The notes below the pieces were generated by a model. The model had not been told where the DNA came from, made no database searches, and worked only from the letters and a program-made list of their open reading frames with translations. Both the position numbers and the translations under genes were made by a program. 52,027 bases of DNA. It comes from Octopus bimaculoides. Taxonomy: Eukaryota. The DNA lies in the NCBI RefSeq assembly GCF_001194135.2, contig NC_068986.1, positions 90,898,019 to 90,950,045 on the forward strand, read 5' to 3'. This document shows, piece after piece, positions 2,420-42,937 of this stretch. Within the stretch, counting starts at the first letter, position 1. The number at the start of each line of letters is the position of its first letter.

Positions 2420-3109
2420 GATTATGACAAGTACAATGTTTATGAGATTGATTCGCTCTTGTTGAGAAGATTCTTCTTTACTTTGCTTTTTCTTCAAATG
2501 CTGATTAATAGTCTTCCGAACAAATGAATAAAGTACAGTCGTGCTGAGGACAAGAATACTGTAAACAATTAATGCCATGAGAGCATATGACCAAAGAAAT
2601 GATCCCCTTAAGACATTCTCACATTCCATAAATATTTTGTTTTCATGAAAAATGGGAACACCCTCAGTGTAGAGAACAGGTGGTAGTACCAATACAACTG
2701 ATAATACAATGATGAAAATAATAAGAGAATTGCGTAGTTTTGGAGTAATTTGTTTACTAAGTGGACAACATATTTTTGTGAACCTTTCAATGGCAATGGT
2801 AAAAAGAATAAAGGATGAAATAGTAGAACAGATGAAGACAATAAACTTGTAAAATTTGCACAAATAATTTGATTGAATTGCAGGGTAAAGTTCAGCCATT
2901 TCCAGAGGCATTCCAAAGATACATCCAATGAGATCAATGACAGCTAGTACAAAGATGAATGTTTCTACATTGCTTTTCTGGGATTGGCGTACATAAATAT
3001 ATACCACAAACGTGTTACCTATGAGTCCTACAATTAGGAAGAAAGGTATGATACTAAAAACAACTAATCTTGAAAGCAAAACAGGATCAGACAAATGGGT
3101 TGCATTCAT
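2420..3109 (-). CDS. class A (rhodopsin-like) orphan GPCR, array copy 1; 3' part hidden in N gap 2077-2419
   Basis: ATG at 3109; MNATHLSDP, TM1 GLIGN, TM2 LAVIDL, TM3 C...ERF, open through TM5/ICL3 up to the gap. Sequence below the gap is homologous to paralog 3' flanks, so the stop lies in the gap. Confidence 0.9.
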
Positions 3110-3599
3110 GTTGAAACAAGTGTGTAGTTTCTAGTTTAGTAAGAATTATGTAAATATGTTGATAGCTGATATGCATATATGATGTGTGTTCATTTATATA
3201 TATAAATATGTATGCAACAATTTCACAGAATGTACTTGTAGGTAAGCAACATGATTATTGTCTTAACATTATTTGTAATCCAAACTTGTATACTGGAGTT
3301 GTTTTAGTTAAGTCTTTATGCAAATACAACTACAATGTGAAGTAAACATCCAGAGTGAATGATGAAAGTCAAATGCAATAGGTTGTGTGGTATTCCAATT
3401 ATATACATTTACAGATTAGTATACATCCTGTTTTGTTTAGTTTATGATTTAATTTAAGATTACAGATGACGATATTGGGCAAATTTAGAAAATTTACGTA
3501 GGAAGGATGATTCAAACACTTACATTTTCCTAATTTGTTATAATTCATATTGCAGCTGTTTTTTGGTACTTCATTGTTCAGTAGAAGTGGTGTCCCTGA

Positions 3600-3815
3600 T
3601 TGCACAATGGACTTCAATGTCTACCTTATTAGCCAGCTGTGACTCTTGACAATGGAGTCGGAGTGTCATGAAAAGCAGACAACATTCAGGGAGATATATG
3701 CAGCACTATGTAGCCGTATGGTCTATATACATTTATATGTCAGACTTGTTAGATGACCTTTTAACAGGCGAATAACAAAACTTGCAACAGCAGTTGTTGG
3801 GATATCTTGTCCATG
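3600..3815 (+). mobile_element. ancient Tx1-like RT relic embedded in the GPCR upstream region
   Basis: Degenerate translation MDFNVYL..RLLTMESECHEK..ADNI..PYGLY..YMSDLLDDLL aligns by eye with the Tx1 ORF2 segment at 5903-6130 (DFASYFSGMPRLSARDAEFC..ITAKDI..MPGLFSDLLA). Confidence 0.6.
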
Positions 3816-3874
3816 GACAAACTACAAACACGACTGAAAACAATACCTCTGCCTTTGCAAAGGCAGAGGTAATA

Positions 3875-6800
3875 ATCGTTTCTTTATTGGCCACAAGGGG
3901 CCGAACACAAAACAAATAGGGACAATACAAATCTGGAGACATGTGGGGTTTAACACAACAATCAAGTAAACGATAAAATGATGACAATTAACAATAGAAG
4001 TATACAATAAAATTCACCAAAAGCAGAGAGTTCCTCACAGGGACAACCAGGGAACCTCACACGTTCTGGTTATCCCATCTGCCAGACGCACCTCAGTCGA
4101 CGCGTCTCTCCTCTTTACATCCTCTGGTTTATGAATGAAAGTTCAGAGTAGGCCCATTTACACAGGCCATCCTTGCCACACGCACCCACCTTTCAACAAA
4201 TTTACTGGGGAGAGGGGGACAGAACTTCCTTCTCTACTCTCACTTTTCTTTTCAAGTGGAACTTGAAATGGTCAATGAAGGCTTGGCCAAAGAGGAAAGT
4301 AACTGTCTTCAGACCTTTCAATCTCATCCACCACACTAATTCCTTCGCCATAGCCACCAGACTGAGGAAAACTGCCTTTCCTNNNNNNNNNNNNNNNNNN
4401 NNNNNNNNNNNNNNNNNNNNNNNNNNNNNNNNNNNNNNNNNNNNNNNNNNNNNNNNNNNNNNNNNNNNNNNNNNNNNNNNNNNNNNNNNNNNNNNNNNNN
4501 NNNNNNNNNNNNNNNNNNNNNNNNNNNNNNNNNNNNNNNNNNNNNNNNNNNNNNNNNNNNNNNNNNNNNNNNNNNNNNNNNNNNNNNNNNNNNNNNNNNN
4601 NNNNNNNNNNNNNNNNNNNNNNNNNNNNNNNNNNNNNNNNNNNNNNNNNNNNNNNNNNNNNNNNNNNNNNNNNNNNNNNNNNNNNNNNNNNNNNNNNNNN
4701 NNNNNNNNNNNNNNNNNNNNNNNNNNNNNNNNNNNNNNNNNNNNNNNNNNNNNNNNNNNNNNNNNNNNNNNNNNNNNNNNNNNNNNNNNNNNNNNNNNNN
4801 NNNNNNNNNNNNNNNNNNNNNNNNNNNNNNNNNNNNNNNNNNNNNNNNNNNNNNNNNNNNNNNNNNNNNNNNNNNNNNNNNNNNNNNNNNNNNNNNNNNN
4901 NNNNNNNNNNNNNNNNNNNNNNNNNNNNNNNNNNNNNNNNNNNNNNNNNNNNNNNNNNNNNNNNNNTGTCACTCCTGCCCACCACTAATCCCCTATAGAA
5001 CTCCATGGTAGTACTTTCACAAACCATGTTGCCTGACTGGCAAAAAGTTGTGAGTTCTTGCCAAAACTCCAGGTGCCAAGCTACCTTTCTTGGTCTATGC
5101 TTGATACATGACTGTAGCTCTGTGAATGAGATGAGATGCAGAAAATCCTGCTTGACAAACAGTGATCACACCTGTTCACCATAAAGAAAGTGCTGGAGAT
5201 GCTGTAGCCTCAGCACATGTCAGCACATCATTAGCTATGGCATGCCCAGTCCTCCACTCAGTGGCTGTTGACAGTAGATGGACCATCTGACGAGTGGAAC
5301 ACGACTCTTCCACAGAAAGCAAAAGAGCAAGCATTCCACCTTGGTCAGCCACGAAGCAGGGCAAGGGATGACAGTCAGGCGGTAGAAGATGACGGAAGCA
5401 ATGTGCACATTCACCACATCTGCCCGAGTTTTCAGGGACAGGTACCTCTCTGCCCATTTGTGGGAAAGAGTGTGCATACTTGACGTACTGAGCAAGTGAT
5501 GCTGAACAATTTCGAAAGACCACTCAAGTGATGCCACTATACATTGCAGTGATCCAGCCTCTGAAAATCGGACTGAAGTTGGCCTACATCGAGAACAGCC
5601 TCCAAGTATAGATGGTCGACCCTGTCAAAAGCTTTTGATTGATCCAAATTGATCGGAGCCCCACCCATACCAGGGTTCTTCCCTACTCTCTCTATCATGT
5701 AGCACACGAAATGGAGGTTGTCAGGAATAGATCTGTTTGGAATAGCGCATGCCTGTGCGTTACCAACCAACTGACGACAAGCGGTAACCTCTTGCCTAAC
5801 ACCTTTGCCAAAATTTTATAATCTGCATTTAGCAGAGTTATAGCCCTAAAATTATCTAATTGATCCCCTTTATTTGAATCCTTTGTCAGCAGCACCACCA
5901 CATCATCTCCTGTTCTGTTGCCAGTTATGAGAGACATCTGCTAAGAGATCACTGAACAAGCCTGGCATATGAAGACCATCAAACCCTGAAGACTTCTCTC
6001 TTGTGCAGGCCTTCATCATGTCCCGTATGTCTTTGGCTGTTATCGAAATTCTGCAGAACTCTGCATCCCTGGCTGAAAGCCGTGGCATGCCGCTGAAGTA
6101 GGAGGCGAAATCCACCTCCATCCCCAACACTGTTTAACGAAACGCTGTTGAAATTCCATACTTGTCTTCTTGGACTCATGTAGAATATACCTGTCCTGGC
6201 TCAAACAAGGCCAAATTCTGGCTTTGTTGCCATGTTGCACCTCTGCCACCTGGGCCCATTTCATGGACTAGCTTGCTAACCTGGTTTCTGAATGCTTGAC
6301 ACTAGGAAAGATGCATTCAGCTTCCAGTACCCAGGGCTTTGCCAATGGAGCCAATCTAGGTCAATTTTTGCAGCCCCCTTTCCTATCAGCTATTCCCACC
6401 CTATCCAGGTGTGCATCCAAAATAGCGTTTCAATTGCGCACTAGAACTAAAGAGTAAGACATCTCAAGGAAAACCTCCAAACGGCTGAAGAAATCTGGCT
6501 GCCCAGTCCCAAATGGGGCGTATACAGCAACTAGTCTGTAAGCACCAGCAACTTACTTTCTGGGGGTCCAGGAAGATTGTCCATACCTTGAGATTCAGAG
6601 TTTTCCTAAACAGCACTGCTACTCCCCCTTTACATTAGAGGTACCCACGTCTTGCAGGAAGCTCATCCTGATGAGTTTATACACCTCTATAGGCATCCGC
6701 ACCAACACCAATCTTTCTGGCACTTGAAAGGTGCTAGTGCCAAAGATCACACCCTCTCTCTCAACATCCTTCCTTCATGATAAGAAGTCCATCAATTGGA

Positions 6801-8199: not shown

Positions 8200-8249
<50 letters not shown>

Positions 8250-8775: not shown

Positions 8776-9172
8776 AAAATGCTTTCTAATTGATGTATCA
8801 ATACCAGCAGATGACAACGTTTCCCTAAAAGAAATGGAAAAACTTTCAAAATACAAAGACGTGGAAATAGAGGTAACTTGAATGTGGAATCTAAAAACAG
8901 AAACAATTCCTACCATAGTAGGCGCCTTAGGTATAATAAAAAAATATTCAGACAAATACATAACAAAAACACCAGGACTTACAAATATGTATAACATACA
9001 GAAAATTGCACTACTGGGTACTGCACACATTCTATGCAAAACACTTTCAATACAGTAACCATAAGAGCATCACAGCAAACCACAGCACATACCCAAGGCA
9101 CACAGAGCTGCGCTTGGTAGTGAAGTGAAAGCACGTTATAAAAATAAAACTACTGAATAATAATAATAATAA
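8776..9172 (+). mobile_element. 5'-truncated R4/Dong-like element (REL domain plus 3' UTR) flanked by (TAA)n
   Basis: KCFLIDVSIPADDNVSLKEMEKLSKYKDVEIEVT (PD..D..K..KY-type REL motif). (AAT)n upstream at ~8665-8720 and at the tail. Confidence 0.8.
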
Positions 9173-9179
9173 ATAATAG

Positions 9180-13890: not shown

Positions 13891-13932
<42 letters not shown>

Positions 13933-14922: not shown

Positions 14923-15846
14923 CTAAAATTTCTCTTCCATTTCAAAGACAGTTTTATCCCGAGTAAATATATTTACAAAACTTTTTCGAAATATTTTGTT
15001 GCAGAATCCATACACCATGGGATTTAAGGATGAATTTAGTATCCAAGTACGATATAAAACTACTTTCAAAATCTGCAACAAGTTAGAATCTTTGCAGAAT
15101 GGATACGAGACACAGAATAGTAGAGTTGGTGAAAAACTGACAAAATACAAAACAGAAATTGAGATAAGCACAATGTTTGTGCGATTGATTCGTTCATGTT
15201 CCGAAGTTTCTTCTTTAGTTTCTTTTTTCTTGAAATGCTTCTTGATCGTTTTCCGAACAAATGAATAAAGTACAGTCATGCTGAGGACAACGATACTGTG
15301 AATAATCAATGCTATGAGAGCATATAACCAGAGGAATGGTCTTCTGAAGTCACTATTACATATGATATAGATCATATGTTCATGAGAAACGGGAACACTA
15401 TCAGTGTATAAAACAGGTGGCAGGACAAATGCAAGTGCTGTAATGATTGTGAAAATCATAAGAGAAATGCACAGCTTTGGAGTAATTTGTATGCTAGATG
15501 GTTGACATATCCTTCTGAATCTTTCAATGGCAATTATAAGAAGAATGAGGGATGACATGATAGAACAGATGAAGATAACAAACTTGTATAATCTACACAA
15601 ATATTTTGATTGAATTGCTGGGTAAAGTTCAGCCATTTCCAGAGGCATTCCAAAGATACATCCAATGAGATCAATGACAGCTAGTAGAAGGATGAATGTT
15701 TCTACATTGCTTTTCTTGGATTGGCGTACATAAATATATACCACAAATATGTTACCTACAAGTCCCACAATTAGGAAAAAAGGTATGATACTAAAAACAA
15801 CTAATCTTGAAAGCAAAACAGGATCAGACAAATGGGTTGCATTCAT
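14923..15846 (-). CDS. intact intronless class A orphan GPCR, array copy 2 (307 aa)
   Basis: Seven hydrophobic helices: GN (TM1), LAVIDL (TM2), C..ERF (TM3), ECL2 Cys, SFSP (TM6), NSSLNPMVY (TM7), helix 8 FRKSF. Ends FEMEEKF*. Confidence 0.95.
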   Translation of the reverse strand: MNATHLSDPVLLSRLVVFSIIPFFLIVGLVGNIFVVYIYVRQSKKSNVETFILLLAVIDLIGCIFGMPLEMAELYPAIQSKYLCRLYKFVIFICSIMSSLILLIIAIERFRRICQPSSIQITPKLCISLMIFTIITALAFVLPPVLYTDSVPVSHEHMIYIICNSDFRRPFLWLYALIALIIHSIVVLSMTVLYSFVRKTIKKHFKKKETKEETSEHERINRTNIVLISISVLYFVSFSPTLLFCVSYPFCKDSNLLQILKVVLYRTWILNSSLNPMVYGFCNKIFRKSFVNIFTRDKTVFEMEEKF

Positions 15847-17690
15847 GTTGAAATAAATGTGTAGCTTCCAGTAAAGGATGTATAATATATATATGTTAAT
15901 TATTGAAATGTATATACGTGCATATGTTCATATATGTGTATAAATCTGTATAAAAGACTTGAGATGCAATAATTTCAGATATGTACTTGTAGGTAAGCAA
16001 CTTGATTAGTGCATTAACACCGTTTGTAATCCAAACTTGTATACTGGAGATGATATTTGTCTTGTTCTGTGCCTGCAGTTGAGTTCTTACACAAATACAA
16101 ATACAATGTGAAATAGCATCATCAGAGAGTGTTTTGTAATATTTTGTCTGATAAATTGCTTATATAGATCAACAGATTAATATACATCCTGTTTTATTTC
16201 ACTAATTAGATTGAAAGTAAATCATCACGACTCAAATATGTACAAAATTAAGAAACCTAAATGATAAGAACATTTTACAAAATTACATTGTTTAATGATG
16301 AATACTAGAAGCACAAATAGTACTGGATAAAAATTGTTGAGTTATTTCTTCACACTTTTTACATTCTAAGCCCAAACCTTGCTGAGGTCAACTTTGCCTT
16401 TTAAATCTTTATGATTGAGAGAATAAGGTACCAGTCAAGTACTGGGGCCAATGATATTGACTTACACCCTCCTCTTAAAACAACAGGCTTCATATCTAAA
16501 TCAGATTTCTCTATCAAATATAATACTTATTTATTCACATTCTTTTGAAATAGTCATGCTTGTAGCTTTTAGGTTTCAGTCTCTTTTATTATTATTAATA
16601 TTACTATTATTAATTCCTTTATCGTCATTGTTGTCATCATTACTATTATTCAAATATGAATAAGAAGCAGCTTGAAGGATATAAACAATATCAAACAGAC
16701 ATACACAATGTATTTTTCTAGTTTGGGTGCCCGCTGCAATTTATAGGCATAAGAGAGTATATTCTCATCAATTTGTCTGATGTTAAAACACCTGGAAATC
16801 ACAGACTATGACTCCCAGGTGAATTTAGGCAAATTGATGAGAATATACTCTCTTATGNNNNNNNNNNNNNNNNNNNNNNNNNNNNNNNNNNNNNNNNNNN
16901 NNNNNNNNNNNNNNNNNNNNNNNNNNNNNNNNNNNNNNNNNNNNNNNNNNNNNNNNNNNNNNNNNNNNNNNNNNNNNNNNNNNNNNNNNNNNNNNNNNNN
17001 NNNNNNNNNNNNNNNNNNNNNNNNNNNNNNNNNNNNNNNNNNNNNNNNNNNNNNNNNNNNNNNNNNNNNNNNNNNNNNNNNNNNNNNNNNNNNNNNNNNN
17101 NNNNNNNNNNNNNNNNNNNNNNNNNNNNNNNNNNNNNNNNNNNNNNNNNNNNNNNNNNNNNNNNNNNNNNNNNNNNNNNNNNNNNNNNNNNNNNNNNNNN
17201 NNNNNNNNNNNNNNNNNNNNNNNNNNNNNNNNNNNNNNNNNNNNNNNNNNNNNNNNNNNNNNNNNNNNNNNNNNNNNNNNNNNNNNNNNNNNNNNNNNNN
17301 NNNNNNNNNNNNNNNNNNNNNNNNNNNNNNNNNNNNNNNNNNNNNNNNNNNNNNNNNNNNNNNNNNNNNNNNNNNNNNNNNNNNNNNNNNNNNNNNNNNN
17401 NNNNNNNNNNNNNNNNNNNNNNNNNNNNNNNNNNNNNNNNNNNNNNNNNNNNNNNNNNNNNNNNNNNNNNNNNNNNNNNNNNNNNNNNNNNNNNNNNNNN
17501 NNNNNNNNNNNNNNNNNNNNNNNNNNNNNNNNNNNNNNNNNNNNNNNNNNNNNNNNNNNNNNNNNNNNNNNNNNNNNNNNNNNNNNNNNNNNNNNNNNNN
17601 NNNNNNNNNNNNNNGACGTTAAACGATGATGATGATGATGATGATGATACATACATACATATACTCTTTTACTCTTTTATTTGTTTTACA

Positions 17691-17743
17691 AAAACAGCTA
17701 ATCTTGAAAGCAAAACAGGATCAGACAAATGGGTTGCATTCAT
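17691..17743 (-). pseudogene. 5' stub of a GPCR copy (MNATHLSDPVLLSRLAV); its upstream region continues at 17744-17830 and 18830-19445
   Basis: Exact paralog start sequence that breaks off into tactcttttactcttttatttg. Confidence 0.85.
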
Positions 17744-17982
17744 GTTGAAACAAGTATGTAGTTTCTAGTTTAGTCAGTATAATGTATATATGTTGATATG
17801 CATATATGTCTGTGTATGTATATATATATATATATACAGACACAGTTGGACTCCCGTTTGGAGCCTGTGAAACTTGAAGTAGCATGGAACAAAATCAAAC
17901 TGTTTCAAACAATACACTAAATGTGTTGACTGTCCTTTTCTTTCATCTGTCAACTACCCATATATATATATATATATATATA

Positions 17983-18700: not shown

Positions 18701-18736
<36 letters not shown>

Positions 18737-19449
18737 TACATATCCTTTGTTCCCAAGCATTAAACTAACACATCTGCTTGTTGTTCCTACACCTGTCTTT
18801 GTGTTTTGCTTTCTGCAAATTTGAACTATATGTATTTATTTATCTGTATAAAACACTAATGGTACATTACTTTCAGATACGTAGTTGTAGGCAATGAAGT
18901 TGATTAGTGCATTAACATCATTTGTAATCCAAAGTTGTATACTGGGGATGATATTTGTTTTGTTTTGTTCTTGCAGTTGAATTCTTACACAAATACAATT
19001 ACAATGTGAAGTAAACATCCAGGAAGAGCTATCAATGTAATACACAATAGCTTGTGTCATATTCTGCTTGTAGAAAATTACAGATTAATATACATCCTAC
19101 TTAGTTGAACTTAACAGATTCACCTTACAATCCAGTATCACAATATTGGACAAAATTAGGAAACTTAAGTAGGAAAGATAATTCAAACACTTACATTTGT
19201 GCAATTTGATTTAATATTGGAGCTTTATTGTGGCACAAGTGGTGACCCTAATCACACAATGGACTGTAATGACAACCTCACCAGTGAGGTGTGGTTCATA
19301 GCAATGGAAAAGCAGACAACATTCAGAGGAATATGTACAGCAATATCTAGCTGCACAAGGGAAAAAAATCACTTGCATTAGATAGTTTACTCTATTGGTT
19401 TTATACATTTATATGCCAGACTTGTTTGGTGAACTTTTGGCAGGTATAT

Positions 19450-21893: not shown

Positions 21894-21973
<80 letters not shown>

Positions 21974-22480: not shown

Positions 22481-22530
22481 AAGCTTTAGCAGTTCTGAAA
22501 CAACTTCCAAAATATTAACAACTTGAATTT

Positions 22531-22614
<84 letters not shown>

Positions 22615-23352: not shown

Positions 23353-23440
<88 letters not shown>

Positions 23441-23912
23441 CGACGACGACAGCAACAATTTTCTTTTACTTTCCAGTATTCTTCAAATGTAAATCTAAAT
23501 TGTAATTCAGAAACTGTGGGAACCAAATTATTTTGAGTTTAAAGTAGAACTTACATAAACAGTTATGTTCCCATAAAAGGTATAAAACAACAGAAACTAG
23601 TGTAAATATGTTATAGAGAAAATGTTCAGCTGTACAAATTGACCTTTTTCATACTAATCTATCTTAGACTGACTCTGGGTCAAGGATACAAGCAGCGTAT
23701 CTTAAAATGTTCAGATTTAAATTAAAACATTCCAATTTTATGAAAGAAAATATAATTCTCTTAAAAATGGAAAAGGTAGTTATTTCACTAAACACCTCAA
23801 TCCTTGAGTTATTTTCAGTCTAGTGCATTTGCTATGAAATGGTAAGCAAAGGAAACGTTTCTGCTACTTGAAAGTATTCCTTGATGTTAAAAAGTGTGGT
23901 GTAAACCAAATC

Positions 23913-24836
23913 TTAAAATTTCTCCTCCATTTCAAAGACAATTTTACTCCTTGTAAATATATTTACAAAACTTTTGCGGAATATTTTGTTACAAAATCCA
24001 TACACCAAGGGATTTAAAGATGAATTTAGTATCCAAGTACGGTACAAAACTACTTTCAAAATCTGCAACAAGTTTGAATCTTTGAAGTAAGGGTATATGA
24101 CAATAATAACGAGGACTGGTGAAAAACTGACGAAAATCAAAATGGTGAGTGAAATAAGTACAGCGTTAGTGTGATTGATTTGTTCTTGTTTGCAAGCTGC
24201 TTCTTAACTTGGCTTTTTCTTGAAATGCTGAGTAATAGTCTTCTGAACAAGCAAATAAAGTACAGTCATGGTTAAGAAAAGTATAATGTAAAGAATTAAT
24301 GCTGCTAGAACATATGACCAGGCAGTTGACCTTCTAAGGTCACAGCCACATATCATATATATCTTATTTTCATGGGTAAAGGGAAATCCTTCATAGTAAA
24401 ACAGAACTGGCAGCACCAATGCAACTGATGTTACAGTTATGAAAATAATAAGAGTTTGCCGTAGTTTTGGAGTAATTTGTTTGCCATGTGGACAACAAAC
24501 TTTTCTGAGTCTTTCAACAGCAATAGTAAACAGAATCAAGGATGACATGGCAGTACAGATGAAGACAACAAACTTGTATAGTTTGCAGAAATATTTTGAT
24601 TGTATTGCCAGGTAGAGTTCAGCCATTTCCAGAGGCATTCCAAAAACATATCCAATAAGATCAGTAACAGATAGTACAAGGATGAATGTTTCTACATTGC
24701 TTTTCTGGGACTGTCGTGCATAAATATATATCACAGAGATGTAACTTATGAGTCCTACAATTAGGAATAAAGGTATGATACTAAAAACAACTAATCTTGA
24801 AAATATAACAGGATCAGACAAATGGGTGGCATTCAT
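23913..24836 (-). pseudogene. GPCR array copy with a single in-frame TAA at 24204-24206
   Basis: The 924-nt span equals that of intact paralogs. The frame continues after the stop (EAACKQEQINHTNAVLISLTILIFVSFSP...NPLVY...FEMEEKF). TM1 GN is changed to SY. Confidence 0.88.
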
Positions 24837-25103
24837 GTTGAAACACGTGTGCAGTTTCCAGTTTCATAAGTACAATGTATATATGTTGATTGTTGATTAT
24901 ATATATATATATNNNNNNNNNNNNNNNNNNNNNNNNNNNNNNNNNNNNNNNNNNNNNNNNNNNNNNNNNNNNNNNNNNNNNNNNNNNNNNNATATATAGC
25001 TTTCTGTTTGTATATATATATATATATATATCTTTCTGTTTGTATGTATGTATATATGCTTTCAGTGTGAATGGTCTGTTTGTATGTATGTATTATATAT
25101 ATA

Positions 25104-26450: not shown

Positions 26451-27982
26451 GATTCAGATTGCCAACGATTCTGCCAGCTCACCACCTGAAGGCCAACAGT
26501 TTTGACAAGGGGAGGTAAATTGATGTCAACTATCTCAGTACTTGAATGGTACTTTATGTTCTCTACCCCTATTTAGGGTTAGATAAAATGAAGGCTTTGG
26601 CAGGGTTTGAAATAATTACCAAAAGTAAATAATGTAAATAATGTAAATAATTCCTCATCTCTCAAATATAGAACTGTATTACCAAACGTGTTGGATAAAA
26701 TAAGTCTTCTCAATTTGGAGTCATGTGGAACTAAACAGCAACAACAAAGTAAGAAAATATATGTAAAATTCAACACATCCATTAACGACAATCTCCAAAA
26801 CATAAAATTACTAGGTTTAATACGTTTACAAACAGGATGCATTCCATAAATTGAAGATATCAAACATATTAACACGCACACACACACATATATAATACAT
26901 TGCTTGTACCAAAGACATGTAAATAAATGTTGAAATGTGAGACAATGAGAACAATGTTAATCACAACACTAGAAGTGTTTATTTCTTAAATAAGTATAAA
27001 AGTTGCTAATGATGTATGTAAAATACAAGATTGAAGAGTTGCTGGGTTTCAAAATAATTTTTTGCTCATTAAAGAATATCAAACATTTTNNNNNNNNNNN
27101 NNNNNNNNNNNNNNNNNNNNNNNNNNNNNNNNNNNNNNNNNNNNNNNNNNNNNNNNNNNNNNNNNNNNNNNNNNNNNNNNNNNNNNNNNNNNNNNNNNNN
27201 NNNNNNNNNNNNNNNNNNNNNNNNNNNNNNNNNNNNNNNNNNNNNNNNNNNNNNNNNNNNNNNNNNNNNNNNNNNNNNNNNNNNNNNNNNNNNNNNNNNN
27301 NNNNNNNNNNNNNNNNNNNNNNNNNNNNNNNNNNNNNNNNNNNNNNNNNNNNNNNNNNNNNNNNNNNNNNNNNNNNNNNNNNNNNNNNNNNNNNNNNNNN
27401 NNNNNNNNNNNNNNNNNNNNNNNNNNNNNNNNNNNNNNNNNNNNNNNNNNNNNNNNNNNNNNNNNNNNNNNNNNNNNNNNNNNNNNNNNNNNNNNNNNNN
27501 NNNNNNNNNNNNNNNNNNNNNNNNNNNNNNNNNNNNNNNNNNNNNNNNNNNNNNNNNNNNNNNNNNNNNNNNNNNNNNNNNNNNNNNNNNNNNNNNNNNN
27601 NNNNNNNNNNNNNNNNNNNNNNNNNNNNNNNNNNNNNNNNNNNNNNNNNNNNNNNNNNNNNNNNNNNNNNNNNNNNNNNNNNNNNNNNNNNNNNNNNNNN
27701 NNNNNNNNNNNNNNNNNNNNNNNNNNNNNNNNNNNNNNNNNNNNNNNNNNNNNNNNNNNNNNNNNNNNNNNNNNCAAACCTTTCCAATTTTACGAAAGAA
27801 AATATGATATAAAAATAATGAAAACATTGGTCATTTTATAAAAATATCTGAAACCTTGAGTTATTTTCAATATTGTACAAAAGAAAGAAAACAGTATTCT
27901 TTTCAGGAAATGGTCAGCAAAGAAAATGTTTCTTCTACTTGAAAGAATTCCTCTCTATTGAATGTGTGGTGTAAACCAAATC

Positions 27983-28904
27983 CTAAAATTTCTCTTCCAT
28001 TTCAAAAATAATTTGACCCCTAGTAAAAATATTTACAAAACTTTTCCGGAAATTTTTGTTGCAGAATCCATACACCATGTGATTTAAGGACGCGTTTAGT
28101 ATCCAAGTACGATATGCAACTACTTTTAAGATCTGCAACAAATTAGAATCTTTGCAGAATGGATATATGACGAAGAAGATACATGTTGGTGAAAAACTGA
28201 CAAAATACAAAACAGAGATTGAGATAAGTACAATGATTGTGCGATTGATTCCTTGTTGTCTGCGAGCTTCTTCTTTACCTTGCTTTTTCCTGAGATGCTG
28301 AGTAATAGTCTTCCAGATAAAGGAATAAAGTACAGTCATGGTTAAGAAAAGTATAAAGTGAACAATTACGGCTAATAGAGTATATAACCAGTCAGATGAC
28401 CTTCTAAGGTCTCCGTCACATATCATGTATGTCTTGTTTTCATAGGTAAAGGGAACACCTTCATAAAAGGTAACAGTTGGTACGAGTAGTACAGCCGATA
28501 TTATTGTTATGGAAACAATAAGTGCCTGACGTAGATTTGGGGTAATTTGTTTTCCAAGTGGACAACATATTTTTCTGAACCTTTCAATGGAAACTGTGAG
28601 AAGAATGAAGGACGACATGACAGAACAGGTGTAGACAATATACTTGTATATTTTACACAAATAATTTGATTGAATTGCAGGATACAGTTCAGCCATTTCC
28701 AGAGGCATTCCAAAGATACATCCAATCAGATCAATGACAGCTAATACAAGGATGAATGTTTCTACGTTGCTTTTTTGGGATTGGTGTACATAAATATATA
28801 CCACAAACATGTTACCAATGAGTCCCACAATAGTAGAAAGGTATGATACTGAAAACAACTAATCTTGAAAGTAAAACAGGATCAGACAAATGGGTTGCAT
28901 TCAT
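27983..28904 (-). pseudogene. GPCR array copy with a 2-nt frameshift deletion near codon 24 (~28830-28836)
   Basis: True ATG at 28904; span is 922 nt versus 924. aatagtagaaagg here versus aattaggaagaaagg in paralogs. The listed 291-aa ORF starts at TTG. TM7 NP is changed to NH. Confidence 0.88.
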
Positions 28905-29676
28905 GTTGAAACAAGTGCGTAGTTTCTAGTTTAGTAAGAATTATGTAAATATGTTGATAGTTGATATGCATATATGATGTGTGTTCATTTATATATATAT
29001 ATATGTATGCAACAATTTCACAGAATGTACTTGTAGGTAAGCAACATGATTATCATCTTAACGTTATTTGTAATCCAAACTTGTATACTGGAGTTGTTTT
29101 AGTTAAGTCCTTACACAAATACAACTACTATGTGAAGTAAACATCCAGAGTGAATGATGAAAGTCAAATGCAATAGGTTGTGTGGTATTCCAATTATATA
29201 CATTTACAGATTAGTATACATCCTGCTTTGTTTAGTTTATGATTTAACTTAAGATTACAGCATCACAATATTGGACAAACTTAGAAAATTTACATAGGAA
29301 GGATGATTCAAACACTAACATTTTCCTAATTTGTTATTATCAATATTGCAGCTGTCCTTTGGTACTTCATTGTTCAGTAGAAGTGGTGTCCCTGATTGCA
29401 CAATGGACTTCAATGTCTACCTTATTAGCCAGCTGTGACTCCTGATAATGGAGTTGGCATGTCATGAAAAGCAGACAACATTCAGGAAAATGTGTGCAGC
29501 AATATGTAGCCGTATAAGGGACAAGTGACCTGCTTTAGATATCTTACCGTATGGTCAATATACATTTATATGTCAGACTTGTTACATTACCTTTTAACAG
29601 ATGAATAACAAAACATGCAACAGTTGTGCTGATGAGACTTGCTTGATGAACTTAGGGTAAGCATGTACCAAACCAC

Positions 29677-29713
29677 AAAACATAACAGGATCAGACAAAT
29701 GGGTTGCATTCAT
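29677..29713 (-). pseudogene. 5' stub of a GPCR copy (MNATHLSDPVMF) with a 5' flank like that of copy 37348-38271
   Basis: 29677-29810 aligns with ~38235-38365. Confidence 0.85.
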
Positions 29714-30329
29714 GTTGAAACAAGTTCGTAGTTTATAGTTTAGTATGTTTAACGTGTATATGTTGATTGTTGAAATGTATGTATTTGTATGCTTGTATTA
29801 GTATATATATANNNNNNNNNNNNNNNNNNNNNNNNNNNNNNNNNNNNNNNNNNNNNNNNNNNNNNNNNNNNNNNNNNNNNNNNNNNNNNNNNNNNNNNNN
29901 NNNNNNNNNNNNNNNNNNNNNNNNNNNNNNNNNNNNNNNNNNNNNNNNNNNNNNNNNNNNNNNNNNNNNNNNNNNNNNNNNNNNNNNNNNNNNNNNNNNN
30001 NNNNNNNNNNNNNNNNNNNNNNNNNNNNNNNNNNNNNNNNNNNNNNNNNNNNNNNNNNNNNNNNNNNNNNNNNNNNNNNNNNNNNNNNNNNNNNNNNNNN
30101 NNNNNNNNNNNNNNNNNNNNNNNNNNNNNNNNNNNNNNNNNNNNNNNNNNNNNNNNNNNNNNNNNNNNNNNNNNNNNNNNNNNNNNNNNNNNNNNNNNNN
30201 NNNNNNNNNNNNNNNNNNNNNNNNNNNNNNNNNNNNNNNNNNNNNNNNNNNNNNNNNNNNNNNNNNNNNNNNNNNNNNNNNNNNNNNNNNNNNNNNNNNN
30301 NNNNNNNNNNNNNNNNNNNNNNNNNNNNN

Positions 30330-31560
30330 GGCAACGACCTCGCTTGAATGATTTTCTAATGTGCCACCAGTACAAGTGCTTGAAGGCAACGCTAGTATCA
30401 ATTAAGCTCAAATGGTGCTACTTAAGGGCCACTAGCATGGAAGCCAGACAGCTGCTCTGGTAATGAACACGCTCAGACAGTGCTGATAGTGCTCCACTGG
30501 CGCAGGTGCCAGTCATCGAGTATAGTTCAATTACCATTTCAATTTCACTTGCCCCAACAGATCTTCGCAAGCAGAGTTTAGTGTCCAATGAAGGAGAGGT
30601 TGGCATGAGTGCCAATTATCGGATTTGGTTCAATTTCAATTTCAAATTTCAAATTCCAAAATTCACTTGCCTCAACAGGTCTATGCAAGCAGGGGTTTAG
30701 TGTCCAATGAATTAAAGATAAGAATTAGTAAGCTGGCTACACTTCTGGCAGAGGTCACAGATTATGCTCTAACTTGCCTTGCCGGGCCTTCTAATGTACT
30801 GCATATTTCCAAAGGTCCCGGTCACTGGTCATTGTCTCGGTGAGGACTAAAGGTCGAATGTCATGCTTCACCACCTCATCCCAGGTCTTCCTGGGTCTAC
30901 CTCTTCCACAGGTTCCCTCAACTACTAGGGTGTGGCACTTTTTCACACAGCTATCCTCATCCAGTCTTGCCACATGTCCATACCAGCGCAATCGTCTCTC
31001 TTACACACCACAACTGATGCTTCTTAGGTCAAACTTTTCTCTCAAGGTACTTACACTCTGTCGAGTATGCACACTGACATTACACATCCATCGGAGCATA
31101 CTGGCTTCGTTTCTTGCAAGCTTACGCATGTCCTCTGCAGTCACGGCCCATGTTTCACTGCCATGTAGCATGGCTGTTCGTACACATGCATCATACAGTC
31201 TGCCTTTTACTCTGAGTGAGAGGCCCTTTGTCACCAGCAGTGGTAAGAGCTCTCTAAACTTTGCCCAGGCTATTCTTATTCTAGCAGCTACACTTTCAGT
31301 GCACCCTCTCCCGTTACAAACTTGGTCACCGAGTTAGCAGAAGCTATCAAGTCCTTCTAGTTTTTCTCTCTGGAATGTGGCAAAGGTTGTTTTCTGCACA
31401 TTTTCAGTGTTTATTGCTCCTGAGTATCTGCCACATACAAAAACTATCTTGCTAGTTAGCCTTCCTTTGATATTGCTGCACCTCTTATGTGTCCACAGCT
31501 TACATTGGGTACATCTTATGAAGTCTCTACCTACGCCTTTTCTACAGATCGAGCAGGGTC
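30330..31560 (-). mobile_element. 3' portion of an RTE-clade LINE (RT C-terminus plus probable 3' UTR); small related fragment at ~35230-35660
   Basis: KGLSLRVKGRLYDACVRTAMLHGSETWAVT...MLRWMC..., RWYGHVAR..EDSCVKKC...GRGRPRKTWDEVV. Confidence 0.88.
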
Positions 31561-34036: not shown

Positions 34037-37000
34037 AATCCTTATTCCATTAATATTCTGTAATTAGCCCATGTTAGTCTTAAAACAAGTTCATGACTAT
34101 ATAAGATAGTATNNNNNNNNNNTTAGCTTAAATTTTAAAATAATTTTTTTAAATAATTCAAAATAGTTTTCTGAGCCCAATATATATAATATTCTTAAAC
34201 TTTACACCTTATCTATAGCCTTTGAATTCAAAATTGACACTACTTCAGGGATTTTGTATAAACTAATTACATTTTTATTATTAACATACTTCTTATTATT
34301 AACATAATAATTAAGCTAATATTGATATCTATAAATTTCCCATACTTAGTATATGTAAAACAATACTGATACTTTATTCAGACTAAAGAAAAAGCCCTGT
34401 TGACCTAAATGCTTAAGGTTTAATTCCCCAACATTATGATAGCAGTAAAAAACACCCAACCTAAAATAGTGTTGCCACTTTGACCAGTGAAACCTTTATA
34501 ACCATATCCATGTATAATGCTTATACCTTCCCTTTCCTTAGGAGTGATTGCCCCTTATACTATAACCACTAGATAAGAGACAATAAAATCAGAGACAGTT
34601 AGAATTCTACCAAGAACTAATTACTAGCCTGCTAGCCTTGGCTATGTCAAGATAGATTTTTATGTATTCTTCTTCCCACTTGGATTTTAAGTGTTGCCAC
34701 AATTATAAAGTGTCTATTCTACTGTAATTTTCTACATTTTTGTGCAGCTGAAGATTGCTCTACATATTGCATTTAATGTAATGCTTGCATTACTTAAATA
34801 AATGGAGTAGTATGAAACGTGCGTACTGCAGTCATCTTTAAAATCCGTGTTGCTTATTTTGATTTTTTAAATATTTAGATATATAAATACCTAAACAGTC
34901 CTGTGGAGTCTCCCTATCCTCTCTTCCTGAACAGCTTACATGCACTCTTTTTATATCCTCTTAATCACTTCCTTGCTGGCTCTTACTCTGGATATTGTAT
35001 GGGAATGAGAAAGTTTGTAACACACTTTCATTCATTGAATACAATTATGTAGTAAAGTCTTTGTGCAGAACCTCTTCTTTCCAGGTGATGACAAAAGTGT
35101 CACAACTATCTTTCCACTGTCACTCCCAAGTACACAGTTTTAGGTCCTTTACCATCAATGGTGGCACAATAAAAAGAGGTAGTAGAGAGATTATGGAAAT
35201 GTTGGAGTGATGCCAGATACAGGAACCAGTCGGGGTGAGGGCACTGGCACAGACCACATTTAGATGGTGCTTTTTACATGCCATCAGCACGGGAGCCAGT
35301 CAGGTGGCACTGGCATCAGCCTCAACTACAGTTTCCATTTGATTGTGGTTTGATTTGATTTTGATTTATTTGACCCTATAGGTCTCCTCAAACATGGCAT
35401 GTCACCTGACGATCCAAAGGTACATTTTTAAGTGGGCTGCTTATGCAACACTGGTGTAGGCTACAGCTGTGATATCACTTTACTAACCAGGTCTTCTTAG
35501 TCAAAGCATATCTCCAGAGGTCTCGCTCTTTTGTCATTGCATCACCACTTCATCCCATGTCTTCCTGGGTCTCCCTCTACTATGGGTTCCTTCCACTATT
35601 TAGGAGTGATACTTTTTCACACAGCTCTCCTCATCCATACGCAGTACATGACCATACCAGTGCAGATATTAATGATAATCTCCATGGGTTGGCCAGTCTA
35701 AAACTTCNNNNNNNNNNNNNNNNNNNNNNNNNNNNNNNNNNNNNNNNNNNNNNNNNNNNNNNNNNNNNNNNNNNNNNNNNNNNNNNNNNNNNNNNNNNNN
35801 NNNNNNNNNNNNNNNNNNNNNNNNNNNNNNNNNNNNNNNNNNNNNNNNNNNNNNNNNNNNNNNNNNNNNNNNNNNNNNNNNNNNNNNNNNNNNNNNNNNN
35901 NNNNNNNNNNNNNNNNNNNNNNNNNNNNNNNNNNNNNNNNNNNNNNNNNNNNNNNNNNNNNNNNNNNNNNNNNNNNNNNNNNNNNNNNNNNNNNNNNNNN
36001 NNNNNNNNNNNNNNNNNNNNNNNNNNNNNNNNNNNNNNNNNNNNNNNNNNNNNNNNNNNNNNNNNNNNNNNNNNNNNNNNNNNNNNNNNNNNNNNNNNNN
36101 NNNNNNNNNNNNNNNNNNNNNNNNNNNNNNNNNNNNNNNNNNNNNNNNNNNNNNNNNNNNNNNNNNNNNNNNNNNNNNNNNNNNNNNNNNNNNNNNNNNN
36201 NNNNNNNNNCAAACATATTAACACGCACACACACACATATATAATACATTGCTTGTACCAAAGACATGTAAATAAATGTTGAAATGTGAGACAATGAGAA
36301 CAATGTTAATCACAACACTAGAAGTGTTTATTTCTTAAATAAGTATGAAAGTTGCTAATGATGTATGTAAAATACAAGATTGAAGAGTTGCTGGGTTTCA
36401 AAATAATTTTTTGCTCATTAAAGAATATCAAACATTTTCATTGAAAGAGAATTTTAATTGCTATTTTTAAAATTGTCTTAGAATTGCTAAAAGCACAAGA
36501 GATTAATTTTAAATCCTTTCTCTGACAAATGAATTGCACAAAAGAAGTGAATACATTGTTAGGAACATATAACATGCATAGGTAACATATCCATACCAGT
36601 GCAGATATTAATGATAATCTCCATGGGTTGGCCAGTCTAAAACTTCTGTGATTTAAAAAAAGTTGATACAAATACAGGAATAACATAATTCTGTGTAGAA
36701 GACTTGACCAACTAACTCAAGGAGGGAAAAGTTTACATAAGAGTTATGATGATGATGAAGACGGTGGTAATAATGATGATGATAATGATGATGACTGTGC
36801 CAACACCAACAGCAACAATTTTTTTTTTCCAGTATTTTTTTAATGCAGATTTAATATGTAATTCAGAAACTGTAGGTTCCAAATAGTTTGGAGTTTAAAA
36901 GAGAACTTTGATACACAGTTATGGGTCTACAGAAAGTATAAAACTACAACAGAAGCTAGAATAAATATGTAACAGAGAAACTGTTGAGGTGTTCAAATAG

Positions 37001-37347: not shown

Positions 37348-38271
37348 CTAAAATTTCTCTTCCATTTCAAACATAATTTTACCCCTAGTAAAAATATTTA
37401 CAAAACTTTTCCGGAAATTTTTGTTGCAGAATCCATACACAATGGGATTTAAGGATGAATTTAGTATCCAAGAACGATATAAAATTAATTTAAAGATCTG
37501 CAACAAATTAGAATCTTTGCAGTATGGATATATGACTAAGAAGACAAGGAATGGTGAAAAACTGACAAAATACAAAACAGAGATTGAGATAAGTACAATG
37601 ATTGTGCGATTGATTCCTTGTTGTCTGCGAGCTCCTTCTTTACTTTTCTTTTTCCTGAGATGCTGAGTAATAGTCTTCCAAACAAAGGAATAAAGTACAG
37701 TCATGGTTAGGAAAAGTATAATGTGAAGAATTAAGGCTGATAGAGCATATGACCAGACAGATGACTTACTAAGGTCACAGTCACATATCATGTACATCTT
37801 GTTTTCATAGGTAAAGGGAACACCTTCATTATAGATAAAAACTGGTACTATTTGTATGGCCGATGTTATTGTTATGGAAACAATGAGTATCTGAAGTAGA
37901 TTTGGGGTAATTTGTTTTCCAAGTGGACAACATATTTTTCTGAACCTTTCAATGGAAACTGTGAGAAGAATGAAGGACGATATTGTAAAACAGGTGTAGA
38001 CAATATACTTGTATATTTTACAGAAATAATTTGATTGAATTGCAAGATAAAGTTCAGCCATTTCCAGAGGCATTCCAAAGATACATCCAATCAGATCAAT
38101 GACAGCTAGTACAAGAATGAATGTTTCTACGTTGCTTTTCTGGGATTGGCGTCCATAAATATATACCACAAACATGTTACCAATGAGTCCCACAATTAGG
38201 AAGAAAGGTATGATACTGAAAACAACTAATCTTGAAAACATAACAAGATCAGACAAATGGGTTGCATTCAT
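37348..38271 (-). CDS. intact intronless class A orphan GPCR (307 aa)
   Basis: All seven TM segments present with GN, LAVIDL, ERF, SFSP, NSSLNPIVY. Ends FEMEEKF*. Confidence 0.95.
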   Translation of the reverse strand: MNATHLSDLVMFSRLVVFSIIPFFLIVGLIGNMFVVYIYGRQSQKSNVETFILVLAVIDLIGCIFGMPLEMAELYLAIQSNYFCKIYKYIVYTCFTISSFILLTVSIERFRKICCPLGKQITPNLLQILIVSITITSAIQIVPVFIYNEGVPFTYENKMYMICDCDLSKSSVWSYALSALILHIILFLTMTVLYSFVWKTITQHLRKKKSKEGARRQQGINRTIIVLISISVLYFVSFSPFLVFLVIYPYCKDSNLLQIFKLILYRSWILNSSLNPIVYGFCNKNFRKSFVNIFTRGKIMFEMEEKF

Positions 38272-41200: not shown

Positions 41201-42028
41201 TAACCACACCAGTACTTGAATGGCACAATATTTTATCTAGCACTGGAAGGGTAAGATAAAATAAAGGATTTGGCAGGAAAAAAAATAGGTCTTGTCAATT
41301 CAGAATGATGTGGAGCTAAACAAGATAAAACATAGGAAACAAAATTCAATACATCCATTAACTACAATCTCCAAAATATAAAATTATTCAGCTCTGCACA
41401 TTTAAGAACAGGATGTGTTCCATAAATTGAATATATCAAACATATTAACACACAAACACAAAAACGGTGATGATGATGACTGCGACAAGAGCAACAATAT
41501 TGTTTATCCAGTATTTTTTTAGTGCAGATTTAATATGTAATTCAGAAATTGTAGGTTCCAAATAGTTTGGAGTTTAAAAGAGAACTTTGATACACAGCTA
41601 TGGGTCTACAGAAAGTATAAAACTACAACAGAAGCTAGAATAAATATGTAACAGAGAAACTGTTGAGGTGTTCAAATAGGCCTTTCTGATACTAACCTAC
41701 CTTAGACTGACACTGGATCAAGGATAGAAACAGCATATTTTAAAAGGTTCATCATCATCATCATCATCATTTAACATCCACTTTCCATGCTGACAGGGTT
41801 AAAATCAAAACTTTCCAATTTTATGAAAGAAAATATAATTCTCCAAACATTAGGATAGAATAAAATGGAAAAGTTGGTTATTTCATTAAATACCTAAAGC
41901 TTTGAGCTCGTATTTTCAATATTACAAAAAATTTTTTAAATGCATTTTGTTGGAAATGGTCAGCAAAGAAAATACTTCTGGTATGTGAAAGAATTCCTCT
42001 CTATTGAATGTGTGGTCTAAACCAAATC

Positions 42029-42937
42029 CTAAAATTTCTCATACATTTTAAAGTCACTTTTATCCCTACTAAATATATTTACAAAACTTTTCCAGAAAAT
42101 TTTGTTACAGAATCCATACACTATGGAATTTAAGGATGAATTTAGTATCCAAGAACGATATAAAATTACTTTAAAAATTTGTAACAGGATAGAATCTCTG
42201 CAGTATGGATACATGGCACAAAAGAGAAGGGTTGGTGTGAAACTAACAAAGTATAAAACTGAGACAGAGAAAAGTATAATGCTTGTGCGATTGATTTGTT
42301 CTTGTTGGAAAGATTTTTTACTTTGCTTTTTCATCAAATGCTGATTAATAGTCTTCTGAACAAATGAATAGAGCACAGTCATGCTTAGGACAAGAATACA
42401 CTGAATAATTAATGCTATGAGACGATATGGCCAGAGGAATGACCCTTGAAAGTCACAGCTATACATCTCTTCATGGGAAAAGGGAACACTTTCAATGTAG
42501 ATAACAGGTGGCAGTATCAATGCAAGAGATGTTACAGTTATGAAAATAACGAGAGTATTGCGTAGTTTTGGATTCATTTGTTTACTAAGTGGACAACATA
42601 TACTTCGAAACCTTTCAATGGCAATTGTGAGAAGAATGAAGGATGACATGATAGAATAGGTGAAAATAATAAACTTGTATAATTTACACAAATATTTTGA
42701 TTGTATTGCCAAGTAGAGTTCAGCCATTTCCAGAGGCATTCCAAAGATACATCCAATAAGATCAACAACAGCTAGTACAAGGATGAATGATTCTACATTG
42801 CTTTTCTTTGGTTGTTGTACATAAATATATACCACAAATATGTTACCTACGAGTCCCACCATTAGGAATACAGGTATGATACTAAAAACAACTAATCTTG
42901 AAAACAGAACAGGATCAGACAAATGGGTTACATTCAT
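42029..42937 (-). CDS. intact intronless class A orphan GPCR (302 aa; 5-codon deletion in ECL2)
   Basis: Same family. ECL2 FSHEEMYSCDF versus VSHEHMIYIICNSDF. TM7 NSSLNSIVY (NP changed to NS). Ends KMYEKF*. Confidence 0.93.
   Translation of the reverse strand: MNVTHLSDPVLFSRLVVFSIIPVFLMVGLVGNIFVVYIYVQQPKKSNVESFILVLAVVDLIGCIFGMPLEMAELYLAIQSKYLCKLYKFIIFTYSIMSSFILLTIAIERFRSICCPLSKQMNPKLRNTLVIFITVTSLALILPPVIYIESVPFSHEEMYSCDFQGSFLWPYRLIALIIQCILVLSMTVLYSFVQKTINQHLMKKQSKKSFQQEQINRTSIILFSVSVLYFVSFTPTLLFCAMYPYCRDSILLQIFKVILYRSWILNSSLNSIVYGFCNKIFWKSFVNIFSRDKSDFKMYEKF

Follow-up and report, generated by a model that had tools for sequence, protein, structure and literature searches.

A tandem array of single-exon class A G-protein-coupled receptor genes, apparently restricted to octopuses, at a published receptor locus of Octopus bimaculoides

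Introduction

Two cephalopod-specific expansions of G-protein-coupled receptors (GPCRs) of class A, nested among molluscan neuropeptide receptors, have been described by Ritschard, Fitak, Simakov & Johnsen (2019, Proc Biol Sci, PMC6408891), who reported that positive selection acts on these expansions, that they occur in tandem clusters and that they are expressed outside the brain; their group 1 comprises 63 genes from three species. Here we analyze a 52,027-nt stretch of the Octopus bimaculoides genome (the window; NC_068986.1, positions 90,898,019 to 90,950,045 of the forward strand) that carries a tandem array of such receptor genes. The locus is already known, having been published in 2019 as part of group 1: Table S2 of that paper lists the window genes as Class A, Group 1, Scaffold18646, minus strand, with matching UniProt accessions and coordinates. 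Four of its models lie in the window (Ocbimv22011402m to 405m) and three just to its left (399m to 401m). The window matches chromosome CM046606.1 of GCA_001194135.2 at ~90.898-90.950 Mb with 100% identity, including the same N-runs, and corresponds to v1 Scaffold18646 with an offset of 1,093,846, which reproduces the Table S2 positions of four of the copies (c1, c2, c4 and c5). A literature search by gene ID turned up no papers besides this one.

The genes are the same in both studies, and the 2019 paper provides their tissue expression, positive-selection tests and tandem co-localisation. Its group 1 is broader than the family considered here, which has a minimum identity of 64% among its members and is apparently octopus-restricted. 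Beyond the published account, we describe a pseudogene (c3), an unannotated intact gene (c6), two 5′ fragments, a recombination mosaic (c4), the homogenisation of a 5′ module, the apparent nesting of the array in a diphthamide-synthesis (DPH) gene, and truncated or chimeric gene models (402m, 404m and 405m). A preliminary description of this sequence had proposed an array of olfactory-receptor-like orphan GPCRs with a possible chemosensory role. Its observation is partly confirmed, being real and largely as described, at a known locus of a known kind, and its interpretation is partly supported.

Lineage-specific class A expansions of lophotrochozoans have been put forward as candidate chemoreceptors by Nath et al. 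(2025, MBE, PMC11886862), with cephalopods poor in them (mean 29 per genome); Aplysia candidate chemoreceptors, as cited there, are grouped with such expansions. The present array resembles these expansions in its tandem clustering, its mixture of full-length, truncated and pseudogene members, and its greater variability on the extracellular side. Octopus chemosensation is currently explained by nicotinic-receptor-like channels. As cited in the same paper, these chemotactile receptors (van Giesen 2020; Allard/Kang 2023) are, like the array, lineage-specific and tandemly expanded, and they are expressed in suckers; they are pentameric ligand-gated channels of unrelated fold with a demonstrated chemosensory function, whereas the GPCRs here are known from sequence, models and bulk RNA-seq. 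A deorphanised member would tell whether GPCRs sense chemicals at the skin and suckers or whether peptide signalling has diversified in peripheral organs.

Composition of the array

On its minus strand, the window carries six single-exon paralogs of the class A GPCR type (302-307 codons; c1 to c6), along with two 5′ fragments. With three intact proteins (c2, c5 and c6) as tblastn queries, we recovered six full-length or nearly full-length copies (E 1e-96 to <1e-140) together with both stubs, in agreement with the number and strand first reported. We assign a probability of about 0.75 to the reading that these genes form a fast-evolving tandem array within an octopus-restricted subclade of group 1 and that its intact copies are working receptors.

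Three copies are intact. The c2 gene (14923-15846; Ocbimv22011403m, A0A0L8HM91; Pfam 7tm_1 E 2e-31; exact match in GCA_001194135.2) and the c5 gene (37348-38271; Ocbimv22011405m) are uninterrupted open reading frames (ORFs) of 307 codons each, and c6 (42029-42937), the first array member, is one of 302 codons, which bears out the single-exon coding sequence (CDS) of ~300 amino acids (aa) noted earlier. The c6 gene has a 5-codon deletion in the second extracellular loop (ECL2); Table S2, drawn from the v1 gene set used in 2019, has seven Scaffold18646 genes and omits it, and an exact look-up of its product in the contig index gave no record. Two copies are pseudogenes: c3 (23913-24836) has a TAA at codon 211 (24204-24206), and c4 (27983-28904) is frameshifted at codon 25 by the loss of 2 bp (between 28832 and 28831), with its remaining body open. 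The c1 copy (2419-3109; tblastn over aa 1-219, 70-73% identity) is open through codons 1-230 and then enters an assembly gap (2077-2418). Stub 1 (17690-17836) consists of a conserved 5′ module and codons 1-17/18 (CDS part 17690-17743), followed by unrelated sequence and then a gap (16858-17614). Stub 2 (29666-29811) consists of the 5′ module and codons 1-12/16 (CDS part 29666-29713). The interleaving of intact, nonsense and frameshifted copies in the preliminary description is therefore retained, but its truncated copy, c1, is an assembly gap; likewise, both stubs exist as fragments, but stub 2 is part of c4 rather than a separate relic.

The array continues leftward of the window with four further copies (P0010, P0017, P0008 and P0015/P0028), which the original bounds of 2420-42937 left out. 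The whole array has at least 10 genes in ~64 kb, and the window holds its upstream two-thirds. Five more members are dispersed on other scaffolds, and the family has ~15 loci in O. bimaculoides.

Receptor sequence, fold and relatives

The proteins are class A (rhodopsin-like) GPCRs. They match Pfam 7tm_1 (PF00001) with 103-113 bits, compared to a cut-off of 30.5, across profile positions 1-260 of 260 (E ~1e-30). The olfactory receptor (OR) family model 7tm_4 (PF13853) yielded no match at E up to 0.01, and besides 7tm_1 there were only weak cross-hits to nematode Srsx/Srv. Across two alignments (A1 and A3), residues N32, D59, R109, Y194, P240, N275-P276-x-x-Y279, C84 and C163 are invariant or nearly so, and the conserved class A switches are present (N1.50, D2.50, R3.50, Y5.58, P6.50, NPxxY and the C3.25-ECL2 Cys pair). 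The family lacks W4.50, P5.50 and W6.48: there is no Trp in the fourth transmembrane helix (TM4), Leu occupies 5.50, and positions 6.47-6.50 read S-F-S/T-P. These three residues are frequent but non-obligatory in class A, so their absence does not exclude membership. The substitution of ERF for DRY, described earlier as general, occurs in c1, c2, c4, c5 and c6 but not in c3 (ERL); that of SFSP for CWxP holds for c2 to c5 but not for c6 (SFTP), and in c1 the motif falls in the gap.

All copies begin with MN(A/V)TH, and the N-x-T sequon at residue 2 is found as stated. The N-terminus is ~8-10 residues long, with TM1 starting from ~residue 9. Efficient glycosylation requires a minimum distance of 12-14 residues between a sequon and the membrane (the 12-14-residue rule). 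Because N2 lies only ~8-10 residues from TM1, its glycosylation is doubtful, and we infer that it is probably inefficient at a site so near the membrane. At the other end of the protein, the C-terminal F-E-M-E-E-K-F is conserved in nearly all paralogs (for example, window 14923-14946); speculatively, it resembles a class III PDZ-binding motif (D/E-x-hydrophobic-COOH).

An AlphaFold2 model of c5, built on a 66-sequence alignment, has a predicted local distance difference test score (pLDDT) of 92.4 and a predicted TM-score (pTM) of 0.90; it shows seven helices and helix 8, and a beta-hairpin in ECL2 (residues 148-165). Foldseek aligned it to 1367 PDB GPCR chains at E up to 1e-3, and each of the 50 best neighbors is a peptide receptor (CCK1R, opioid, orexin, neurotensin, apelin, NPY or NPFF; TM-score 0.7-0.8), with no olfactory receptor structure among those 50. 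By sequence, the nearest solved structures are the CCK-A and NPFF receptors. Vertebrate peptide receptors (CCK1R, NPFF1/2, orexin, neurotensin, opioid, apelin and NPY) match the octopus proteins in sequence with E 2e-17 to 1e-11 and have in common with them a beta-hairpin in ECL2, the disulfide cysteines of TM3 and ECL2, R3.50, NPxxY and helix 8. In contrast, the octopus proteins are only 17-28% identical to them, without one-to-one orthology; they have an N-terminus of ~10 residues instead of 40-60, a short third intracellular loop and a short C-tail; and they carry ERF for DRY/ERY, F6.48 and S6.47 for CWxP, no TM4 Trp and no Pro 5.50.

The comparison to vertebrate OR clusters is closest at the level of the genome. 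Both have single-exon CDSs of ~300 codons in tandem arrays with interleaved pseudogenes, a short N-terminus with an N-x-T sequon, and birth-and-death evolution with gene conversion. However, the octopus proteins do not match 7tm_4, no OR appears in the Foldseek top 50, and there are ~15 loci, not hundreds. The olfactory-receptor-like architecture of the preliminary description thus applies to the genomic layout but not to the proteins, which have the ECL2 beta-hairpin of peptide receptors. The peptide-receptor-like ancestry that it also proposed agrees with the nearest known relatives, which are peptide receptors by both sequence and fold.

A word-indexed search returned, at 64-83% identity, only proteins from O. 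bimaculoides and O. sinensis; the bivalve receptors that came next reached no more than 32%. In an exhaustive hidden Markov model (HMM) profile search of 1.84 billion representatives, the family forms a single 50%-identity cluster (560 bits). The next match, P0029, scores 225 bits and has an O. bimaculoides counterpart (P0271) that is 83% identical, which indicates that P0029 itself comes from an octopod. It is followed by proteins of 320-360 aa, including another O. bimaculoides group 1 gene, that keep SFxP and have longer N-termini and ERY or DRY. These results support a family that is an octopus-restricted subclade of the cephalopod-specific group 1, in line with the lineage-specific subfamily proposed at the outset, for which no ortholog was found outside octopods. 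No one-to-one ortholog was found in a named neuropeptide-receptor orthogroup, the best non-octopod matches being at most 32% identical; the earlier statement that no known ortholog could be named stands. NCBI names are inconsistent across paralogs (NPFF, NPY, melatonin, neuromedin-U and angiotensin) and consequently point to no clear parent family. In the nearest sister gene, P0271 (A0A0L8HM64) and P0029, NPVICG replaces NPxxY and the Tyr7.53 switch is lost, alongside ERY and SFTP; the annotated N-terminus of P0271 is apparently over-extended, with a likely start at MFSINATF.

By neighbour-joining tree and synteny, c2 pairs with O. sinensis P0012 (86% aa identity), c6 with L4a (L004:10001-10909) and c3 with L4c, and the clade of c5, c4, P0025, P0002 and P0004 pairs with O. 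sinensis L4b. O. sinensis has one-to-one orthologs for most copies, plus species-specific duplicates. The birth-and-death turnover described earlier is therefore visible as duplication and pseudogenisation, but it is only moderate, since most copies remain one-to-one between the two species.

Expression and possible roles

Expression shares for these genes come from the published bulk RNA-seq (Table S2 of PMC6408891). The c2 gene is expressed in viscera (0.40) and posterior salivary gland (0.33), the c4 model in sucker (0.28), viscera (0.26) and testes (0.19), and c5 broadly (Tau 0.66) and partly in nervous tissue; a chimeric model of c1 and its neighbor P0010 is also broad. The combined skin and sucker share is 0.07 for c2, 0.13 for c5, 0.37 for the c4 pseudogene and 0.09 for the c1/P0010 model. 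Skin and sucker together exceed half of the expression in 4 of 12 family members. Among the relatives outside the window, P0004 is expressed in skin (0.76), P0006 in sucker (0.73), P0015 in skin (0.41) and sucker (0.15), and P0008 in skin (0.31) and sucker (0.22), while one member is embryo-biased and one is brain-biased.

One account of these patterns, following Ritschard et al., is that the paralogs are receptors for neuropeptides, hormones or paracrine peptides that have partitioned the peripheral tissues among themselves. We hold it as a real if tentative possibility. The family sits inside a clade of molluscan receptors for tachykinin, orexin/allatotropin, CCK, GnRH and neuromedin-U; its closest solved relatives by sequence and fold are the CCK1R, NPFF, orexin, NTSR1, opioid and NPY receptors; its G-protein switch residues are conserved; and its expression diverges across viscera, salivary gland, testes, axial nerve cord, embryo and skin. 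However, a ratio of nonsynonymous to synonymous differences (pN/pS) of 0.5-0.7 is high for a receptor bound to a conserved peptide, no ortholog was seen outside octopods, an N-terminus of ~10 residues removes a common peptide-docking element, and the inconsistent NCBI names leave the paralogs without a clear parent family.

The same data bear on a second account, in which the genes are a dedicated chemoreceptor repertoire, expressed in sensory cells of the sucker, skin and olfactory-organ epithelium, that detects waterborne or contact chemicals in parallel to the chemotactile receptors. Its genes would be single-exon, clustered, lineage-specific and accompanied by pseudogenes, as they are here; P0004, P0006, P0015 and P0008 are strongly skin- or sucker-biased; evolution in TM4-ECL2-TM5 is near-neutral or positive, as the rapid turnover and variable binding pocket of such receptors would have it; and the lophotrochozoan class A expansions of PMC11886862 are candidate chemoreceptors. 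Yet the window genes show no sensory-tissue enrichment, the family is small (~15 loci), most copies have one-to-one O. sinensis orthologs, and the proteins have a peptide-receptor fold with an ECL2 hairpin and no OR-family match; moreover, bulk sucker and skin RNA-seq is blind to cell type, and the olfactory organ was unsampled. We consider this account rather unlikely. A chemosensory role may still apply, with no particular support from the window genes, for which an endogenous or paracrine peptide role ranks somewhat ahead of external chemoreception.

The intact copies are most likely working GPCRs for short peptides or small molecules. Each copy is probably transcribed from its own conserved proximal module of ~70 nt, expression would fall in different, mostly peripheral tissues, and ligand specificity would diversify at the top of TM3, in TM4 and ECL2, and at the top of TM5. 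A further idea, which we regard as improbable on present evidence, is that the octopus subfamily, or its skin- and sucker-biased members, could be a body-surface GPCR chemosensory system beside the chemotactile channels, and that recombination at the 5′ module could swap promoters (c4 combines a c1-type upstream region with a c5-type body), moving receptors to new expression domains.

Selection and the 5′ module

Synonymous divergence (dS) is 0.12-0.16 between orthologs and 0.27-0.48 between paralogs; between c4 and c5 it is 0.077, and by this value and by synteny c5 is a post-speciation duplicate of the c4 lineage. For intact orthologs pooled together, pN/pS comes to 0.67 (p = 0.005), with 1.21 in codons 126-200, which cover TM4-ECL2-TM5, and 0.50 elsewhere (p = 8e-5). 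In recent duplicates it is ~1. Sequence entropy is highest at the extracellular ends of TM3 and TM5 and in TM4 and ECL2, and TM2, TM7 and helix 8 are strongly conserved. The last 10 codons are lost in P0010 and in O. sinensis P0003.

These measurements also speak to the proposal that the array is mostly decaying, with relaxed constraint and with transcripts that are largely by-products of DPH transcription. Two of the six window copies are pseudogenes, P0010 and O. sinensis P0003 have lost their last 10 codons, recent duplicates have a pN/pS of ~1, a housekeeping gene of the same orientation appears to enclose the array, and c5 and the c1/P0010 model are expressed broadly with low Tau. Against this, pN/pS falls to 0.50 outside the variable region, and the ORFs that remain intact are older than the species split (ortholog dS 0.12-0.16, paralog dS up to 0.48). 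The conservation of TM2, TM7 and helix 8 argues the same way, as does a Tau of 0.93-0.97 in some members, unlike what read-through from a host gene would be expected to give. That most of the array is decaying is thus quite improbable.

Among paralogs, pS is 0.07 in codons 1-25 and 0.3-0.46 beyond them. No such drop is present in orthologs, which argues for gene conversion at the 5′ end. A ~70-nt module upstream of the ATG is common to all 14 of the 14 copies examined in the two species and contains an invariant CAACATAT(A/T)(T/C)A element. We suggest that the module is a proximal promoter, autonomous in each copy, with CAACATATATAC as a TATA-like element. In this respect, the locus would be a record of concerted evolution in a promoter-proximal module. 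The idea of a splice acceptor conserved immediately upstream of the ATG (TACTAAAC...TAG) was rejected, as c2, c3, c5 and O. sinensis P0012 lack its AG.

Several observations weigh against the view that the intact copies are working receptors with promoters of their own. Constraint is weak (0.67) and near neutral in the putative binding region, and some intact copies may be drifting toward loss. The promoter reading of the 5′ module is drawn from its conservation, and the 24-kb span of one O. sinensis gene model would imply distant 5′ exons if it were real; the model is a chimera of two copies. The values in Table S2 are proportions across tissues and not absolute levels, and with the array apparently nested on the same strand in a DPH gene, some of the RNA-seq reads may be host pre-mRNA. 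Lastly, the status of c1 and stub 1 is concealed by assembly gaps.

Pseudogenes, recombination and duplication

The c3 and c4 pseudogenes are real. At codon 211 of c3, TAA replaces AAA (24204-24206), and of the sites that the family conserves to at least 90%, the gene has changed 10, among them G31S, N32Y (N1.50) and C63Y, all derived, besides turning ERF into ERL; the ORF at the orthologous position in O. sinensis (L004:33097-34020) is intact. The 2-bp deletion of c4 lies in non-repetitive, non-homopolymer sequence.

The sequence upstream of c4 is a recombination mosaic. In a sliding-window comparison, the c1-type 5′ flank before the c4 body (28903-29622, minus strand) is 92-100% identical to the c1 upstream flank and 30-75% identical to that of c5, and the CDS downstream of it is c5/P0025-type. 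P0025 is an intact near-twin of c4 on another chromosome (CM046616.1, 8.04 Mb; 92.5% protein identity). Read in order, window 31646-30330, stub 2, the c4 body and 27089-26085 are collinear with the P0025 locus, in which the homologs of stub 2 and of the c4 body are contiguous and form one uninterrupted gene. Therefore, stub 2, with 94.8% identity to the 5′ module of c5, is the 5′ end that c4 originally had. Ectopic recombination inserted ~0.75 kb of c1-type 5′ sequence and displaced this end, and the locus records a gene killed when a paralog's 5′ region was inserted ectopically. Stub 1 and ~1.8 kb of its upstream flank are an 86-89% copy of the P0017 5′ region. The O. sinensis array was searched for both stubs, and neither was found.

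O. sinensis has recent dispersed duplicates of its own, at distances of 1.1 Mb and 16 Mb, within segmental duplications of 6-15 kb. Retroposition was considered as the source of the dispersed copies and rejected, as these copies lie in 6-15 kb blocks of flanking homology. One of the duplicates, the L4b copy P0003 ('melatonin receptor type 1B-B-like'; locus L005, O. sinensis CM016864.1, 20.46-20.49 Mb), is on a ~12-15 kb segmental duplication with 92-98% identity, inside a same-strand gene with a Cob_adeno_trans domain. New copies thus arise by tandem and dispersed segmental duplications of 6-15 kb, within and between chromosomes; ectopic recombination and gene conversion, centred on the conserved 5′ module, gave rise to the c4 mosaic and stub 2; and copies are lost by nonsense and frameshift mutations.

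Assembly gaps and gene models

There are eleven N-runs in the window, none of them inside the CDSs of c2 to c6. The gap at 27090-27774 (685 N) is collinear with c5 and with the P0025 locus, and the c5 paralog predicts ~690 nt there; the gap at 24913-24991 lies 77 nt upstream of the c3 ATG. Where c1 enters the gap at 2077-2418, 530-590 nt are missing by paralog prediction, compared to 342 N, and homology to the paralog 3′ flank resumes at 1778-2076. Because the gap cuts the CDS and the 3′-flank homology resumes beyond it, the truncation of c1 is a feature of the assembly. The homology of stub 1 ends 75 nt before the gap at 16858-17614, which could hide the body of the gene. The chromosome-level assembly re-scaffolds the same contigs with the same gaps and matches the window at 100%; it is unable to fill them, since it adds no independent O. 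bimaculoides sequence.

Microsatellite or low-complexity runs flank most of the gaps (17615-17656, 22486-22614, 23353-23526 and 18701-18760); they include (CA)n and runs that read as poly-His, poly-Ser or poly-Asn when translated, and they are the probable cause of breaks in the short-read assembly. The 3′ flanks of c4 and c5 share a block of 229 bp with 99.6% identity (26861-27089 and 36210-36438), with each copy abutting a gap and the rest of the units ~90% identical; it could be a very recent gene conversion or an assembly artefact.

With a gapped short-read assembly, the copy number and the pseudogenes could themselves be products of collapsed or duplicated haplotypes and base errors. The eleven N-runs, the near-identical 229-bp block beside two different gaps and a chromosome-level assembly that merely re-scaffolds the same contigs would allow this. 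However, the DNA of the copies differs by 10-35%, far beyond heterozygosity, and the long-read O. sinensis assembly has the same gene order, with orthologs of c6, c5/c4, c3 and c2. In addition, c3 bears many further damaging substitutions, and the 2-bp deletion in c4 lies in non-repetitive sequence at the recombination junction. An origin of the array in assembly error is accordingly very hard to believe.

Several database models at the locus are truncated or chimeric, and the intact c6 is missing from the 2019 set. The UniProt model A0A0L8HM69 (Ocbimv22011402m) wrongly splices c1 across the gap to the next gene, P0010. Ocbimv22011404m (c4) begins at the internal Met33 and lacks TM1, as does Ocbimv22011405m (c5), which begins at M33; the NCBI model of c5 is full length. 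In O. sinensis, P0005 ('neuropeptide FF receptor 2-like') is a chimera of codons 1-87 of one array member and codons 88-307 of another, 23 kb away. Splicing between copies was considered as the origin of P0005 and rejected, as there is no frame-preserving donor-acceptor pair inside the shared stretch.

Host gene and spacer sequence

Two exons of a DPH gene lie upstream of c6, both on the same minus strand as the array. The exon at 46410-46538 encodes positions 106-156 of 302 of Pfam PF01866 (E 6e-7), is preceded by TTCCAG and is conserved in O. sinensis L004; the exon at 50916-51068 encodes positions 60-106 of 302 (E 1e-9) and lies between AG and GTAAAG. The homologs of the 52-aa DPH exon are all exon-sized Diphthamide_syn fragments, with no full-length octopus protein among them. 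A search by motifs only did not find the remaining DPH domain in the window, in the 15 kb to its left or in L001-L004. An NCBI DPH model of 424 aa spans L001 and L002 entirely, and the O. sinensis DPH model overlaps the first two GPCRs. Because DPH exons lie upstream and the 424-aa model spans these loci, at least eight array genes seem to be inside a DPH intron in the same orientation. The array appears to be nested in that intron, and the nesting is a caveat for expression claims on these GPCRs that are based on RNA-seq.

The spacers between the genes are filled by fragments of reverse transcriptase (RT) of the long interspersed nuclear element type; an RVT_1 reverse-transcriptase fragment lies at 26.2 kb. 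A ~745-bp element occurs twice in the window (30785-31529 and 44710-45439; 86% identity), and a 329-bp repeat with 96% identity is found at 1-328 and 8850-9178. Comparable repeats border the duplicated blocks of O. sinensis.

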